Positions 6,250 to 14,931 of a stretch of 64,000 nt of DNA are shown here, piece by piece. This DNA comes from Vitrella brassicaformis CCMP3155 (Eukaryota > Protista > Chromerida), in the NCBI GenBank assembly GCA_001179505.1, contig CDMY01000249.1:84740-148739 (forward strand), written 5' to 3'. Each line of letters starts with the position of its first letter. Position 1 is the stretch's first letter. The position numbers were made by a program, and so were the translations under genes. The notes under the pieces are model-generated. The model made no database searches, was not told where the DNA came from, and saw nothing but the letters and a program-made list of their open reading frames with translations.

Positions 6250-7913
6250 ACATGGCTCACCATTCAAACCAAACGCTTCGGGCGCCATGTAAAGCCTTGT
6301 GCCCGCTCCTGCACACGCAATTGTGCACATGGACACCTAGCCTGACTCGCGGCGGCAGCGTCTTCTTCTCGTTTGTCTGTCACCGCCTTGAGCCGACACT
6401 GTTCTGTTGAGATCGATGACGAGCCCGAAATCGGTAATCTTGATGTCTTCTCCCTTGGTCACCTGCACAATAAAGAAATGGGTGCGAATGGACGTTGCAG
6501 TCTTGCAACTTACAAGTATGTTGCCGGGCTTCAAGTCACGATGTACTATATTCTTGTCGTGAAATGACTGCACGCCCTCACAAATCTATCCGACGACAGA
6601 TGAACGGGTGCTCTGATTCAGCCCTCTGTGCCCGTATTAGCTACTTACCTGTTTCGCAAACTTGTCGCGGAGATTGGCCGGCAGAGGACCCTTCGTCCTC
6701 TCGAGAAACGACTGCAGTGAGCCACCCTCGCACAACTCTGAGACACACGAAAGCAACCACCAGGCAAGAAAAGTCAGAGGGTAACGAGCACATGGACAAC
6801 CCACCCACCTGATATGATCATGGGTCCGTAAGTTTCGTGAGAGCAGATGCCCAGAAAGGTGATGACATAGGGGTGCCTGATATGCAACATCGGCTCCACC
6901 TCCTTCAAGACGTCGTCATAGAGAACCTGTATGAAAACATGTCGTATCTATTCGTTGGTCCGTGGATCGAGCTGCCGTGCCGACGTGGATGGGTATGATT
7001 TTCCTGTCCTCCTCATTGACGACCTTGATAGCCACCGGCTGACCTTTCCACAGCCCCTTGTAAACCGTGCCAAAGCCTCCGGCTCCTTGACAGACGCACA
7101 CATTCAATTGACCAGATGTGGGCATGCGATGGCCTCTGGCTCACCGAGTCTGTCTGCCTCGCTGAATCTGATGTTTTGCCGATCGATGCGCAGGCGGAGA
7201 GCCGCCGCCATGACGGACTGCTTATCGCCCTTTTTCGTCGTCTACGAACACAAAGCCAAAGCAAGTGGGTCGTGTGTGATGAGCAGGTGCCCTCTCACGT
7301 ATTTCATCGGCGGTGCCGGTGCCTGTCCTGATGCATTCTGGCCAGATGGCACTGCAACGCACACAGCATTGGATGCAATGATGTGCCAGATCAGCATGTG
7401 AAGACAGACAGACCTGTTTGCTGCTTGTATTTTTCCATGATCTCTCTGATTTTCGGCTTCCCAGCCGCCAAATCCCACGGCGTTTTTCCCTGCCAAATTC
7501 AAATGCGTCACTGAATCATTCGACCATTCACAAGTCTGTGTGCACTTGTTTCGTCGTTCTTGATGTCGAGGAGATTGACCCCGGCCTCAACGCCCCACTC
7601 CAAGCTGCATTTGGGCACAGAGGGTGAGGAGAGAGAGACTACATAATGGTTGGTTTGGGTTGTTCATTAGTGCCGCTTACAGCTGAGCCACCGAATCGCG
7701 TCCGCTGTTCTTGACAGCCTCGTGCAGCACTGTCTCTCCGACCTGTGTGTGTGATGCTCAGAGCAGGGCCGTCAAGGAAGGACTGCGAGAAGGGAATCTG
7801 CTTCTCACCTCGGTCTGGTGTGTGAGGATGTTCTGCTTGTCGTGCCCTTTGGCATACATGGCTTTCAGCACATCAACCCAATAATTCGCAGCAATAAACG
7901 GCGTCTGACCAGT
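6194..7913 (-). pseudogene. 3' part of a disrupted ankyrin-TKL kinase gene (copy A)
   Basis: GAGGFGTVYKG, VAIK, HRDLKPGN, TDFG and YMAPE are present. The sequence stops in subdomain IX at ~6194. One donor reads acaagt (7544-7549) where the paralog has gtgagt. Near-identical to 32774-34090. Confidence 0.85.
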
Positions 7914-8016
7914 GTAGATCTATCGGTTGACGTGCTTTACAACCGCTCACACGTCCATTCAGTCAAATCAAGCTGCACGCAAAGGTCTGTGCGTTAACGG
8001 TCGCCTCTTGGCGGTA
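7914..8016. repeat. 3' pseudo-LTR of the Penelope-like element
   Basis: 103 bp, 4 mismatches to 12857-12959. Confidence 0.92.
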
Positions 8017-8118
8017 CACGATGCACTGTAGATAGATCGACATGCAGCAAACCGCAGCGGTATTAGTCTCGCGAGATGCGGTGACACGACGAAACAAAGG
8101 AGCTAGAGAGCAGCACCA

Positions 8119-11100
8119 TTACGTCAGATCAGCAGCAGACAGCAACGATGGAAAATAACGGGTAATACGATGGAGCTGCCTATGTAGAAAGTGCTGGGAA
8201 TAGCCAAAGAAACCCATTTCCCGCATGCACAGCTTCAAAGTGGCAGGTACCTGGTCATTGCACTCACGCATCGTGAAGTCAAGCACACGCAGCAGATGGC
8301 CATAGACGACATTGGCTTTGCGCCCACGAGACATAGCAGAGCGAGAGTGTACTTAACGAATGAAGGGCAAGACAGGACAGGCAGCAGTCAGTGCCAGGGC
8401 ATTGGGGTTGTGCTGCGAGAGCAGCACGTTAGTGGCGCGAATGTGTACCGTGCATCCAACATACACTCCTGACTTATCCTTCTCCAACACACATTTGTCA
8501 TGATAGAAAGTGGGGGACAGCAGACGATCATGCACACGACACAATGCTCCATGCAGACGTGACGGCACACAAGTGAGGGGTGGGGAGACAAACAGCCGAT
8601 CATCCATTCAGCGACGTACGAAGCAGAAACGAAAGGCTTCCTTCTCATGCACTGACAGGCCATGAATGAATTCTCTCTCACGACCAGCAGCAAATATGTT
8701 CGCCAGCCCTGGACTGAGCTGACTGCCCTGAGGGAAACCCTCACACTGGTACAGCAACAGACCACTCAGGCGTGTGTAACCGTAGAGAAGATCATGCTCA
8801 ACCACACGAATGACATCCTTTATGGTATATGTACGACACGACACATAGTTGCAGTTTGTAGTGAAAAAAGGCTTGTGGCGGGTGGAGACAGACCGACGAT
8901 CACAGCCATACATAGACGGATACAAACAAGCAGACGCATGCAACACAGGCCAGGGTCGTCGACGAGGTACATTGACGAACTTGTAGCGTGTTGGTCCTTT
9001 AGAAAGTAGTATAAAGAATACAGCGCACGAATCGCATCATCACATGGGCAGCTGCGGTAGAAGTTACCGATGTCATGGATGTGTACAGTGGGCGAGGACG
9101 GAATGGCATTCGACACGACAGCATGGCCATGTATGAATCGATTGTGGCGAGCCAGTGCATCGAACAGAGAAGACACACGCATAAACGAGAAATGGTCAGG
9201 CATCCAATCATTCCACATACTCAACACACGTCCTACATCGGCATATATGCGTGCAAAACGGTGGCGGAAGTATGAGTTGAGAGGCCGTCATTTCATTGCA
9301 GACCATTCGCTCACATTCGCACAAAATGACTTCATCTTTGGCCACAGCACAGTAGTACCCCACACGTGAGTGCGCCGAGGTGCTGCTGGGCGTGGGCCAT
9401 TGAGAAACGAAGGCAGATTGAGAAAGTCAGTATGAATCACGTCATCGTTTTGTAGCGGGATAACATACGATGGATTGCCTAAGTGCAGACACCAATTAGC
9501 TTCCATGTACTTAAGCGGACACATCCATGCAAGACATCCCTTACTCTTGTCTACTGGTGTACACACCAAACGACGCAGCAGAGACGCATGACGCATTACA
9601 ACATGCATACGTACGTATTGCTGTGACTCAACTAACTTATCATAAGCCGGCTTCAAAAAAGAATCGACGCACTCTTCGATAACAGGGGTGTAGGGCTCTG
9701 GGTGTGACACACGAGGAAAGACACGCACCACCGTGCGAACAAATTGACGTTTCACAGATGAAAAAGTAGGTAGCAGTGTGCTATTTCTATTCCAATGGTC
9801 AGAAAGGCAAAGCAACGCACGCATAAATGGATCACTCAACAACACACACACATGCCCATTCATCTTGGGCCAATCATCAAACACATGCAATGTACACGGA
9901 CATGACACCTCATGCATGGGCAGAGACGCAACACGCTTAGCATTGTAGTAAAGTGACGTTAATGAGGGATATGAAGAGAAGACAAAGGTTGCTTCGATAT
10001 GACACATCGAATCTGATGGTAAGTGGCGAAACATCTCTCGTGTAGCATCAATGGCAGCAGCACGAAACACCGGCATATCATTAAGCATGAGTGGGACGTA
10101 GACACGATGAAAAAGTCGCGGCCGCCAGACTCGCAGGTTGACACGTGTGGTGACAGCTCGGCGATACGCAGCATGGAAGCATTCTTAATGCACACTAGAC
10201 AATGTCCGCAGAGCAGAGACATACAAACAACAGCGATCACGATCATTCAATGCACGAACAGCAGCAAGCAATGTATCGAATAGCCGAGGTCGACGTGCAA
10301 GGAGAGCGGCAGTAGCGAGAAGTGTAGTATGCGACACTTTGTCAGCAGTAAGTACTGTATGCAACTTATTAGGTGTAGGTGTAGTGGGGTAAAATCACGG
10401 ATAAGATGACATGACAGGCACAGCGACAGACACATATTTGACATGCAGACGACGCACAGGACGACAGCCTGGCATACTACGATACGGACGATGCAACACA
10501 GAGAGGTGGGTTCGAGACGACGAGCTGCGGTGGGAGTTGAGTGATGGTTGAAAAATATGAATGGCTTGCAGCTCAACAGACTTCATCTGACGCACCGACA
10601 ATCGCAGACCATCGAACGAACACAAAGGAATACATCCATATGCACACACATCAGTACGCGACAGGGTAGAATAGAGATGAGTTTGGGAGCGTGGTAGGTC
10701 GCGCAGGCAGGAAATGCCTTTGCAATGTGTTCAGGCCATTGAAAAAGAATGCCCCAACCCGTGAAGCCCAGATAAGTGTGGCGTGTCCATGGAGAAACAA
10801 CAAAGGATAGCCCGTGGCACATACGTGAGGAGGCGGGCATAAAGAGCTCACTGAGGCGCGCTCTGAATGCTCGTATCTTAGAGAGAAAGTGTGTAGGGGT
10901 CTTACTGACGAGCTCAGCCATAGCAGTTGTGTGTACAGCATGCAAACGATCCGACAGGGCCTTAAGCACAGATGGCGTGACGCAATGGATGGAGCAAGGA
11001 GATGCAAAGTCTCGCAGACCGTCGCAGTGGACCGTCCGAAAGTGCTCCGCATCTCCCGGCTGCACAACAAAAAGTATGTCACATCGACACATACGCCATG

Positions 11101-12694
11101 TGCTTTTACAGTATGAGCAGCGATTGTGTGTACGCAGGTAGTGCAGGAGGTGATGTATACGAGTGAGGAACCGCACAAATCGGAAAAAGTGATGTGACGA
11201 TACAAGATGACCTACAGACGACTCACACACAAACACAACACGTTCCAAAGCAGCTTTCGAGACATGTAGTGCAACACGAGATTCATACATATGTGTATCC
11301 ATATGCGTACATTGACAAACGAGACAGTGAGAACAGGTGTTGGCACAGTGTCGATGGATGTGTGTACTTTCTACCTCATCGCGCGACCGTACAGAGTCAG
11401 AAGACAATACAGCACTCCTGCACGAGACAGTATCCGAAGGCACAGTACCGATAGGGAACAGAAAGGGGGGCAACACAGGTATTGTTCGTGTATGCCACTA
11501 CGGCGCGAGACGCAGTGGCGTCTTACTTTAGTCGCGTTTCGGTCGGAGGCGGCGTTTGGTGTAGTTGATGGCCACATACCAGAGAATCTGGCGCGGCGAC
11601 AGGCCCACCGCATTGGCGCTGATGCGCTTGCCTCACGTCAGCAATAGCGTCTACACCATGTCAGCCATACTAGCACCCAGCGACTCGACGGCACGAACGA
11701 GACGTCTGGCGTGGCCCCAGGCTTCCCCCATGTCGTCCTCATTGTCAAATACCGTGTCGATGTCGCACTCCTCGCTGGACATCATGATGGTGATGCCAGT
11801 GGGTTTGTCGACGTCTCCCTTGTAGATGTCGAATGTGTCCGGCAGATCGCGGATGCGGCGGGCGAGTGCAGCTCGAGAAGTGAGCGCGCTCATATTGACG
11901 AGTGCTCTGTTGGGGATGGCGGCGTCGATGTCGATCTCTATGATGCTACCGCTGTCATTGATGTCCTCGTCGTTGGTGGGCTGAGTATCGTCGGCGGTGG
12001 GCATGTGGGTGTCGACAGCAGAAGCAGCAGCTGCTGCTGCAGACGAGGGGGCTGTGCGTTTGCGGCCTCGATGGGTGTTGGTCTGGTGATAGTCCTCGAG
12101 GAGGCGGGGGAGGGCGGCGATAGCGTCCGCCACCTTCTGTGGGTTGGTCTCATTGATGACGAAACTCACGACACCGTTGACGCCTTACAGGAGGAGGCTG
12201 ATTTGCTGCTCGAGGTCTGTGCGCTGTACACTACGTAGGTTGGGGTTGCTGACGAATGGCTTAGCGGCGGCGATGTCATTGAGGATGCTCCGGTGGGGCT
12301 GCGAGTTGTGCTTGTCGCACAGCAGCTTCAACGCCGTCCCCACGACGAGGAGCGTCTTGACGGTGACGCCGCGTATGTGGCTGTCGGGGTGGCCGAGTGT
12401 GAGGAAGGCGTCCTTCTCGCTGAGGTGTCGGATGCCGTCGGTTTGGTCGTTCTTCACCATGATGTACTTCATGTTCCCGTTCCGGATGACCCGCACGATC
12501 CCCTCGGTAGTATAAAAACATGCCTTGAAGCGGCCTTGATTGTGGGCGGCAATGCCGTGAGGGTTGAGCGGGTCATCGACAAAGCGGACCTCCGTGTCAC
12601 GATCCGTGTGGGAGCGTGTACGGGACGGAGCCGACTGGTCGCCGGCGCCGATGTCGCGAAGGACGTCCACGAAGCGGGAGGGGGCGTGGCTCAT
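8119..12694 (-). pseudogene. Decayed long ORF of the element (~1,500 codons: unknown N-terminal region, GIY-YIG, CxC, RT)
   Basis: ORF-track fragments 12185-12694, 11651-12169 and 10583-11476 share one frame; 10395-10649, 9288-10088 and 8820-9227 share a second; 8608-8946, 8353-8607 and 8119-8334 share a third. About ten nonsense codons and two frameshifts. Confidence 0.8.
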
Positions 12695-12856
12695 GGTTGG
12701 GGAAGCCGACAGGGTGCCGGAAGGGAACGGGAAAGGGGGACGAACCGAAGGGACACGACCAGGAAGGGGAAGGGGGAAGGGGAGGGGGAGAGGGAAGAGA
12801 CGGAAGGGGGAGACGATTCAGAAGGAATGCCAGAAATGGATATCCTCCTATCAGAT

Positions 12857-12959
12857 GTAGATCTATCGGTTGACGTGCTTCACAACCGCTCACACGTCCA
12901 TTCAGTCGAATCAAGCTGCACGCAAAGGTCTGTGCGTTAACGTTCGCCTCTTAGCGGTA
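12857..12959. repeat. 5' pseudo-LTR of the Penelope-like element
   Basis: Direct repeat of 7914-8016, followed by t then CAGT (12961-12964). Confidence 0.92.
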
Positions 12960-12960
12960 T

Positions 12961-13803: not shown

Positions 13804-14931
13804 ATGCAGTCACTGAAGTCGTCCAGCAAGAGCCTTCACGAGCTCAGTGCCAAGGCACTCGACGGGTGAGTACAGTACAAGAGCAACAGCGCCGCACAGC
13901 AGGCGAGGAAGTGATTCATGTCGTGTGTCTGTGTGTCTGTGTGTCTGTGTGTCTGTGTGTCTGTGTGCGTGTGTGGGAATGTCTACGACACGCAGGGCCA
14001 CGGTCAACTTCAAGGACTATGCGGGCAAGGTCCTGCTCGTCACCAACGTGGCATCCAAATGAGGCCTCACCGAGGTGACAACAACACCACACCACACAAG
14101 AGGCCCTTCAAGCGGTATTCTTCACCCACCGCCTGTCTGTCTGTCTGTCTGGGTGGATGGCTTCAGACCCACTACACCCAATTCACGGAGATCTGGCAGC
14201 AGTATCAGGACCGCTTCAAGGGAGGGGAGGAGGAGGGCGGCTTCGAGATATTCGCTTTCCCGTGCGCTCAGTTTGCCAACGAGGTAGGTAGGTAGGTAGG
14301 CAGGCTGCAGGCTGCCAGGCTGCACGTGGTGTGGTGACTGACATTCGGCTGGCAGGAGTTCCCGGACGCGGCCGACATCAAGAAATTCGTCGCGGCCTAC
14401 AACATCCCTGAGAAATACAACGTCAGAATGATGGAGAAAATCGACGGTGCGTCGGTCGTGTCGGGTTACTCGCCAGGCCATTCAGGCCATTGGTCGATCT
14501 CGTTGCATGGGTGGGTGTTGCCTTGTCGGTGTGGGTGCAGTGAACGGCCCGAATATGCATCCGGTGTTCTCGTTCCTCAAGTACCACTCCAGCCTCTATG
14601 ACGACCAGTCCAATGCGGCCAGTCCGATCTCGTGGAACTTCGGTCAGTCACCAGAAACAAGGACAGACAGAAACGACAGCGATTGACACACACGAGACGA
14701 GACGAGACAGACGCTCCTGCGTCTGTTGGTCGTCAATTACCAGGGAAGTTTTTGGTGGACCAGGACGGCCATGTCGTGAAGTACTACGGGCCCGAAGTCA
14801 TGCCTAAGTAAGTGAAGCGACCACCGTTGATGTCACGAACCTCTCTCTCTGTCACGTTGCCATTCCCAACTGTTAGGTCGCTCATTCCGGACATCGACCA
14901 GGTCATCGCTCGTGCGCCGCCCCCACAGTGA
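13804..14931 (+). CDS. GPX: Selenocysteine-containing glutathione peroxidase, multi-exon
   Basis: Spliced: MQSLKSSSKSLHELSAKALDG-ATVNFKDYAGKVLLVTNVASK(TGA 14060-14062)GLTE...AFPCAQFANEE...VNG...HPVFSFLK...ISWNFGKFLVDQDG...IARAPPPQ*. Start codon is tentative. Confidence 0.93.

Follow-up and report, generated by a model that had tools for sequence, protein, structure and literature searches.

A decayed, probably Chlamys-type Penelope-like retroelement in the chromerid Vitrella brassicaformis

Introduction

The chromerid Vitrella brassicaformis is a relative of the malaria parasites. Here we describe a stretch of its genome of 64,000 nucleotides (nt; contig C249:84740-148739, in the following the window), which carries on its minus strand, at 7913-12959, a degraded unit with the remnants of two open reading frames (ORFs). 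The longer of them encodes a GIY-YIG endonuclease (EN) followed by a reverse transcriptase (RT) that resembles the telomerase reverse transcriptase (TERT). With a probability of about 0.85, we read the unit as a decayed copy of a low-copy Penelope-like retrotransposon that has the Chlamys-type architecture of the N-terminal-EN (Naiad/Chlamys) Penelope-like elements (PLEs).

N-terminal-EN PLEs have been known since 2021. Their described range takes in green algae, spike mosses, a slime mould and invertebrates, and the name Chlamys stands for those N-terminal EN+ PLEs that occur in green algae, in Selaginella and in Physarum (Craig et al. 2021, PMC8557442). Naiad and Chlamys elements leave 5'-truncated tandem pieces of variable length as well as 5'-truncated solo ends, and they have no hammerhead (Craig et al. 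2021, PMC8557442).

The element and its parts

All coordinates are those of the window, and motifs were located by three-frame translation of the minus strand of 7913-12960. Sibling copies of the element are named by their contigs (C33, C198, C1049 and so on). Read in the direction of the element, the following parts can be distinguished:

12856-12959, minus strand: upstream partial tandem copy (pseudo-LTR, LTR standing for long terminal repeat); the last 104 nt of the element's 3' end, 96% identical to 7913-8016 and matching sibling 3' ends
12695-12855, minus strand: 5' untranslated region (UTR) of the full-length unit; begins TCTGATAGGAGGATATCC, then a CT-rich tract; the conserved start is seen at sibling junctions
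11531-12694, minus strand: ORF1 remnant, homologous to the intact ORF1 of C33 and C198
11528-11530, minus strand: ORF1 stop TAA, in frame with ORF2; C33 and C198 have a TGA at the corresponding position, also in frame
8122-11527, minus strand: ORF2 remnant (GIY-YIG EN, CxC linker, RT, thumb); matches the sibling ORF L034:1149-4574:-
11081-11122, minus strand: Cys-rich motif RCSYCKSTWRMCRC; CxxCxCx4CxC in intact siblings, ~95 amino acids (aa) before GIY
10536-10813, minus strand: GIY-YIG endonuclease core, inactivated; placed by family alignment, PDB profile and sibling model
9846-9905, minus strand: CxC..GH linker (SCPC...NGHVC; SCPCTLH..NGHVC); present in 19 of the 20 alignment rows covering these columns
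9537-9557, minus strand: DK motif PVDKSKG, before the RT core; D in at least 90% of the family, then K or R
9270-9344, minus strand: RT motifs 1 and 2 (WPKMK ... RPLNSY), with a TGA stop at 9290; K and R invariant in the alignment
9057-9077, minus strand: RT motif A, HDIGNFY; DI near-invariant
8734-9056, minus strand: long A-to-B' insert at the position of the insertion in fingers, judged by spacing and register with yeast TERT
8692-8733, minus strand: RT motif B', PQGSQLSPGLANIF; placed by alignment, a weak RVT_1 match covering the motif
8590-8610, minus strand: RT motif C, R*MDD (RWMDD in siblings), TGA replacing Trp; placed by alignment
8122-8589, minus strand: RT motifs D and E and helical thumb, to the end of ORF2; helices of the sibling model align with the TERT C-terminal extension
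7913-8121, minus strand: stop codon and 3' UTR; the last letters, up to 7913, are ...GATAGATCTACA, a terminus common to ~30 mostly 5'-truncated fragments

The coding parts are spread over all three frames. The first half of the nuclease (GLSFVVSP at 10813-10790, YLGFTGWG at 10774-10751 and FQWPEH at 10744-10727) occupies one frame, and its second half, ELQAIHIFQPSLN at 10574-10536, lies in a different one. The latter frame is shared by the linker, the DK motif and RT motifs 1, 2 and A, with WPKMKSF at 9344-9324 and RPLNSY at 9287-9270 (both on the minus strand). Motif B', R*MDD and the thumb follow in the third frame, which is terminated by TAA at 8121-8119. Nothing is encoded beyond the thumb, and there is no C-terminal endonuclease. 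An initial annotation of this DNA, made from the letters of the sequence, had listed this series of minus-strand motifs, and all of them are found within a few bases of where it had put them. It was equally right that no endonuclease follows the RT and that no Cys pair separates GIY from YIG. Not part of its list were the 104-nt direct repeats, the ORF1 remnant, the two frameshifts and the full set of premature ORF2 stops.

How far has this copy decayed? ORF2 is broken by two frameshifts, near 10700 and 8995, and by six premature stops (11500, 10397, 10187, 9290, 8610 and 8355), and the ORF1 remnant has three internal stops (12187, 11653 and 11635). A variant genetic code was considered as the cause of the ORF2 stops and rejected, because all three stop codons occur. 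The window pieces in their three frames still match an intact 1142-aa sibling ORF with E values of 5e-67, 3e-217 and 5e-122, covering aa 11-1139. Within the nuclease, the Tyr of GIY has become Ser, the invariant Arg is Gln, another Arg is Trp, and one frameshift falls inside the domain. The window copy is a dead, decayed and immobile relic without a function of its own.

The initial annotation had derived these nuclease residues from Y, R and R. The siblings indeed have Y, R and R at these places, and the Ser is one change away (TAC versus TCC). Its further suggestion, a single CpG transition for the Trp and the Gln codon, requires a CGG or CGA ancestor; none was observed, the siblings having CGT or AGA where the window has TGG, and CGC where it has CAA. 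CpG-driven decay of the copy as a whole was considered and set aside. The window lineage shows a mild excess of C>T plus G>A (64, with 16 in CpG context) over T>C plus A>G (39), but identity to each of the siblings is only ~61%, and most of the differences therefore represent subfamily divergence and not decay after insertion.

The element also differs in composition from its surroundings. Within 8001-12000 its G+C fraction is 0.50-0.52, below the 0.53-0.62 around it, and there is a strong plus-strand AT skew of 0.16-0.22.

Sibling copies and subfamilies

The Vitrella brassicaformis CCMP3155 assembly (72,700,666 bp in 1064 contigs) was searched at the DNA and protein level. It holds about seven RT-bearing loci, so the copy number is very low. 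C1049 contains an uninterrupted ORF of 1142 codons (L034:1149-4574:-), and C654, 90% identical to it in DNA, has a frame of 810 codons. The C33 copy carries one frameshift and one stop, the C766 copy runs off the end of its contig and that of C198 is interrupted by an assembly gap; C234 and C368 hold fragments, and C249 is the window copy. Pairwise comparison yields three subfamilies that are ~60% identical to each other: C1049 with C654, C33 with C766, and the window copy alone. C198, which stands outside this comparison, probably joins the C33/C766 subfamily, as suggested by the match of its ORF1 and ORF2 to those of C33.

Between subfamily members, the ratio of nonsynonymous to synonymous substitution rates (dN/dS) of ORF2 is 0.12-0.13, from which it follows that these lineages evolved as working elements under purifying selection. 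Since a naturally intact ORF exists, that of C1049 was used as a stand-in for the broken window copy in profile and structure analyses. Its EN extends over aa 236-342 and its RT over roughly aa 640-1142. The order along ORF2 in intact siblings is a Cys-rich motif, GIY-YIG, an Arg-rich stretch, the CxC..GH linker, DK, an RT with a long A-B' insert, and the thumb.

The flanks of the C1049 copy (L034:514-1026 and L034:4960-5119) stand out by a summed contig depth of 10^4-10^5 in sequencing runs, compared with ~10-60 for the element itself. This copy sits amid an unrelated high-copy repeat.

An N-terminal GIY-YIG endonuclease

With the intact ORF as query, HMMER returned 124 matches at E <= 0.001 from 1.84 billion representatives. 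Those outside Vitrella are distant, with at most 41% and mostly 24-30% identity. In each of the 25 distant relatives that match both domains, the EN lies N-terminal to the RT; Pfam detects GIY-YIG in five of them, ahead of the listed RVT_1 match in three of the five. An alignment of the EN (A1, 24 sequences) has R, E and N invariant and Y, Y, G, T and H near-invariant, which is the classic GIY..YIG..R..H..E..N pattern. The spacer from GIY to YIG is 10-11 residues long and contains no Cys pair or CxxC in any of the 24 sequences; the CCHH motif is absent.

Profile and fold agree on the identity of this domain. Searched against the PDB, the A1 profile returned three chains only at E <= 10, namely I-TevI twice (best E 0.0019) and UvrC. 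The initial annotation had made its reading depend on a GIY-YIG profile match in this region, and the family profile provides it. An AlphaFold model of the sibling EN has a predicted local distance difference test score (pLDDT) of 82, and its top 26 Foldseek rows are all GIY-YIG nucleases. Independently of Foldseek, VIA-align places I-TevI first, with a Z score of 11.4 and a root-mean-square deviation of 2.3 Å over 88/92 residues, followed by T4 EndoII, PD-T4-3, UvrC and Eco29kI. The N-terminal domain of the family is a GIY-YIG nuclease. It shares with I-TevI-type homing endonucleases the fold and the catalytic pattern of Y, Y, R, H, E and N; unlike these, it has neither the zinc finger nor the helix-turn-helix tail of I-TevI and is fused to an RT.

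The sequence upstream of GIY contains no adjoining CX2-5CxxC form. The nearest Cys motif is the CxxCxCx4CxC some 95 aa upstream, which is conserved in the Vitrella copies and occurs in similar form in the relatives P0005, P0016, P0022, P0103 and P0049. Other additions are seen among the relatives as well: P0064 and P0107 have a PCIF1_WW domain between EN and RT, and P0078 and P0038 a zinc knuckle before the EN. Accessory domains vary widely among the N-terminal-EN relatives.

A reverse transcriptase close to TERT

The second alignment (A2, 30 sequences) runs from CxC to the C terminus. Conserved along it are CxC..GH (CPC...GHVC in Vitrella), DK (DKSKG in Vitrella), WPKxK, RPLxSY, DIxNFF, QGSPxSP and RWxDD. 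Against the PDB, the best match of the A2 profile is TERT (E 1.4e-8), aligned from motif 2 through C; RTs of group II introns, retrons and defence-associated reverse transcriptases (DRTs) match only around motifs B to D.

The structural comparison extends this to the whole RT model. The RT model of the sibling has a pLDDT of 89.6 and a predicted template modelling score (pTM) of 0.87, and its first 15 Foldseek matches are all TERTs. VIA-align matches TERTs to model residues 1-623 at Z 13-18, a stretch equivalent to residues 324-1078 of human TERT and thus to its RNA-binding domain, RT and C-terminal extension. The RTs of group II introns, LINE-1, R2 and diversity-generating retroelements (DGRs) reach 11.7 at most and cover only residues ~150-600. 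No retroviral, Ty3 or DIRS-type RT is found among the top 50 structural matches. In a comparison set that had no solved PLE RT structure, the RT is nearest to TERT and not to the RTs of long interspersed nuclear elements (LINEs), LTR elements or DIRS, by profile as well as by fold; a grouping with one of the latter three is what the initial annotation had named as speaking against it.

Two regions deserve separate mention. The 150 residues before the RT fingers, from CxC to DK (model residues 1-150; window ~9560-10010, minus strand; sibling ORF L034:1149-3017:-), align structurally with the TERT RNA-binding domain, a stretch that the non-TERT RTs leave uncovered. The distance from the Asp of motif A to the Gln of motif B' is 115 aa in the Vitrella siblings, 110-133 aa in most relatives and 85-90 aa in one subclade, and in the profile alignment the intervening insert and its yeast TERT counterpart are in register. 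Model residues 342-365, inside this insert, are of low confidence. Judged by spacing and alignment, an insert of the size of the insertion in fingers is present, a feature for which the initial annotation had proposed a test.

Where does this RT stand among mobile elements? Its shape neighbours in the ESM Atlas have TM scores of 0.63-0.77 and include clusters with GIY-YIG plus RVT_1 and one Streptophyta cluster. Animal clusters with DUF8422, HTH_animal, RVT_1 and GIY-YIG, which we take to be canonical PLEs, match at TM ~0.64. In an RT tree with unlabelled relatives, the Vitrella copies group together with 100/100 support, and the stem that leads to them measures 1.52 changes per site. A new subclade, which the initial annotation had considered, would fit this long-stemmed group of Vitrella copies. 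A word-indexed protein search with the RT region and alignment A2 found Vitrella's own gene models only.

Element ends, ORF1 and insertion site

The two 104-nt direct repeats at 7913-8016 and 12856-12959 bound the unit. That at 12959-12856 is the element's own 3' end, and the conserved 5' start, TCTGATAGGAGGATATCC, comes directly after it. The same head-to-tail junction, a 3'-end piece and then the 5' start, exists in C33, C198, C488, C770, C1019, C710 and C646; a degenerate junction pattern hits eight genomic places versus none in a reversed control. The upstream 3'-end piece varies in length, from ~42 nt in C770 over ~118 nt in C488 to >390 nt in C198, where it reaches into the thumb-coding region. 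At some 30 further loci nothing but the 3'-terminal 40-180 nt is present, with varying start points and unrelated downstream flanks. These truncated copies finish alike, in ...AGATCTACA or ...ATACACA, and the last letters of elements are ACA or ACACA. An Rfam search of five loci, 42 kb in total, revealed no hammerhead ribozyme or other family at E <= 1. The variable tandem pieces, the truncated solo ends and the missing hammerhead fit Naiad/Chlamys-type PLEs.

Besides these, C770:70639-71410 and C1019:181686-182649 are short units of ~0.7-1 kb. In each, a 3'-end piece is closely followed by the 5' start, and another 3' end lies downstream of it; such units could be derivatives that have lost internal sequence or are non-autonomous.

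Upstream of ORF2, ORF1 is intact in C33 (446 aa) and C198 (453 aa), with a dN/dS of 0.36 between the two; the C1049/C654 subfamily has no ORF1. The ORF1 product has no Pfam match, ESM Atlas feature or Atlas shape relative, and its Atlas model is poor (pLDDT 0.34). Its stop falls at the same place in three copies (TGA in C33, TGA in C198, TAA in the window), ORF2 continues in frame, and C33 ORF2 has no ATG nearby. In C33 (L032:4685-4750) and C198 (L053:2800-2865) the minimum-energy fold contains an 8-bp hairpin 8-9 nt past the stop, with z of -2.0 to -2.8; in the window copy (11467-11532, minus strand) the minimum-energy fold differs from this hairpin. Readthrough of the ORF1 stop may be a way in which ORF2 is reached, and we mention it as a candidate lead.

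The window copy lies between two exons on its own strand. The upstream one, ~75 nt from the element, encodes ankyrin repeats (13178-12960) and has a GTAAGA donor; the downstream one (7125-6916) encodes a kinase N-lobe. This arrangement suggests that the element was inserted, in the sense orientation, into an intron of an ankyrin-kinase gene. A (GTGTGTCT)n microsatellite at 13915-13978 is ~1 kb from the element and away from the insertion point.

How the element may have moved

By analogy with other PLEs, a mechanism can be outlined for this family. The element RNA would be translated, yielding the ORF2 protein, whose GIY-YIG domain would nick chromosomal DNA. The RT would then prime on the freed 3'-OH and copy the RNA in place. 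The outcome would often be 5'-truncated copies and partial head-to-tail tandems, the pseudo-LTRs. The window copy would have landed in its intron in this way; its catalytic EN residues and both reading frames were lost later.

Comparison with known elements

The closest parallel to the Vitrella family is Chlamys. Both have an N-terminal GIY-YIG that keeps R, H, E and N and lacks the CCHH pair, a CxC linker, a DK motif whose third residue is not fixed and a long A-to-B' insert; both are without a canonical hammerhead and show partial tandem pseudo-LTRs and 5' truncation, and an upstream accessory ORF occurs in some families. The differences are also clear. The host of the Vitrella family is an alveolate, its copy number is very low, its ORF1 has no zinc knuckle and is separated from ORF2 by one in-frame stop, the Cys-rich motif stands ~95 aa before GIY, and the A-to-B' distance of 115 aa is of TERT length.

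With the Naiads of invertebrates, the family has in common the permuted domain order, the CxC linker, a basic stretch between EN and RT, the absence of a hammerhead and the pseudo-LTRs. Naiads, however, are recognized by a CCHH in the GIY-YIG domain together with an adjacent upstream CX2-5CxxC linker, and the Vitrella family has neither; nor does it show their DKA, shorter insert or (TA)n target bias. Canonical PLEs (Penelope/Poseidon, Neptune and Nematis) likewise combine a TERT-like RT with DK(G), GIY-YIG, pseudo-LTRs and 5' truncation, but their EN is C-terminal and has the CCHH, their pseudo-LTRs carry hammerheads, and they have no insert in the fingers. TERT itself is the best match of the Vitrella RT in sequence and structure, including the RNA-binding-domain stretch and the A-to-B' insert. 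It is nevertheless a single-copy host gene without a nuclease whose template resides in a separate RNA, whereas the Vitrella gene exists in several copies, has its own repeats on either side and is joined to a GIY-YIG domain.

Weighing the alternatives

The direct repeats that flank the unit at 7913-8016 and 12856-12959 could in principle be short true LTRs, making this an LTR- or DIRS-type retrotransposon. The upstream repeat, however, ranges from ~42 to >390 nt across copies and is always the element's own 3' end; Pfam finds no RNase H, integrase, protease or tyrosine recombinase, and the RT is nearest TERT, with no retroviral or Ty3-type RT among its top 50 structural matches. We consider this explanation next to negligible. 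Only slightly better placed, and still very improbable, is a non-LTR, LINE-like element that carries a GIY-YIG nuclease. It would account for 5'-truncated copies with a common 3' end, as in target-primed elements, and the LINE-1 and R2 RTs do match the model at Z ~11. These matches are nonetheless lower and confined to the core, while TERTs, at Z 13-18, cover the model from end to end, the 150 pre-finger residues included. Pfam finds neither an APE nor an RLE nuclease, the 3' end has no poly(A) or simple repeat, and tandem pseudo-LTR junctions are a PLE trait.

A more serious contender is an N-terminal-EN lineage apart from Chlamys and Naiad, either as a third branch of permuted PLEs or as an independent fusion of GIY-YIG with a TERT-like RT. 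The 100/100 Vitrella clade with its long stem, and relatives that are distant even among 1.84 billion representatives, are in line with this idea, as are the Cys-rich motif upstream of the EN, the two subfamilies in which ORF1 is joined to ORF2 by an in-frame stop, the TERT-length A-to-B' insert and an alveolate host outside the described range. Set against this, the CxC, the DK, the insert, the missing CCHH and the missing hammerhead ribozyme all match the published diagnosis of Chlamys. Chlamys itself is structurally diverse and paraphyletic in RT trees, and a long branch is thus compatible with membership. We regard a separate lineage as unlikely.

We therefore return to a Chlamys-type PLE as the preferred classification. 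The initial annotation had proposed an N-terminal-EN PLE architecture, which is borne out by the order EN-CxC-RT, the absence of CCHH, and the profile and fold of the EN. Several points nevertheless count against this classification. Membership in the Naiad/Chlamys clade is presumed from shared motifs and closeness to TERT. That this family nicks DNA and uses target-primed reverse transcription is likewise presumed, from what other PLEs do. The (CA)n or (C)n target bias of Chlamys is not evident in about a dozen diverse 3' flanks, of which only that of C33 abuts a (GT)n run. No target-site duplication could be established, as the flanks of the window copy share only an unconvincing 5-nt CAGAC. 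A Cys-rich motif precedes the EN, whereas Chlamys was described without an EN-linker zinc finger, to which this motif may be homologous. In the Vitrella window pieces and the sibling ORFs, Pfam gave no GIY-YIG and only a sub-threshold RVT_1. Finally, two sequencing runs, whose RNA nature is a guess, have contigs over most of the C1049 ORF and do not show that it is transcribed.

Conclusions

Taken at this strength, the finding is a range extension of a described architecture to Alveolata. The transposable element table of the Vitrella genome paper comprises Copia, Gypsy, DIRS, TRIM/LARD, LINE and SINE, with no PLE class (Woo et al. 2015, PMC4501334), and our literature search found no paper linking Penelope-like elements with Vitrella, Chromera or chromerids. 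The initial annotation had suspected both a chromerid host and an extended range, and the host is indeed Vitrella brassicaformis. For its genome annotation this means that gene models such as the 1136-aa protein of the Joint Genome Institute (JGI) on C1049 are retroelement ORFs and not host genes.

A bolder proposal can be built on the same sequences: the Vitrella elements might be a third deep lineage of permuted PLEs that reaches ORF2 by readthrough of a conserved stop and has kept both an RNA-binding domain like that of TERT and the insertion in fingers at full length. We put this forward as speculation that is rather improbable. If it were true, N-terminal-EN PLEs would be present in Alveolata, the green lineage, Amoebozoa and animals and thus reach near the root of eukaryotes, and the elements would be the closest mobile relatives of telomerase.

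Already as a Chlamys-type PLE, the family offers a naturally intact ORF with an RT model that is TERT-like over its whole length, which is of use in tracing the relationship between telomerase and PLEs. A chromerid member extends the N-terminal-EN PLEs to Alveolata and hence to the SAR supergroup, supporting either a great age of these elements or else their horizontal spread.

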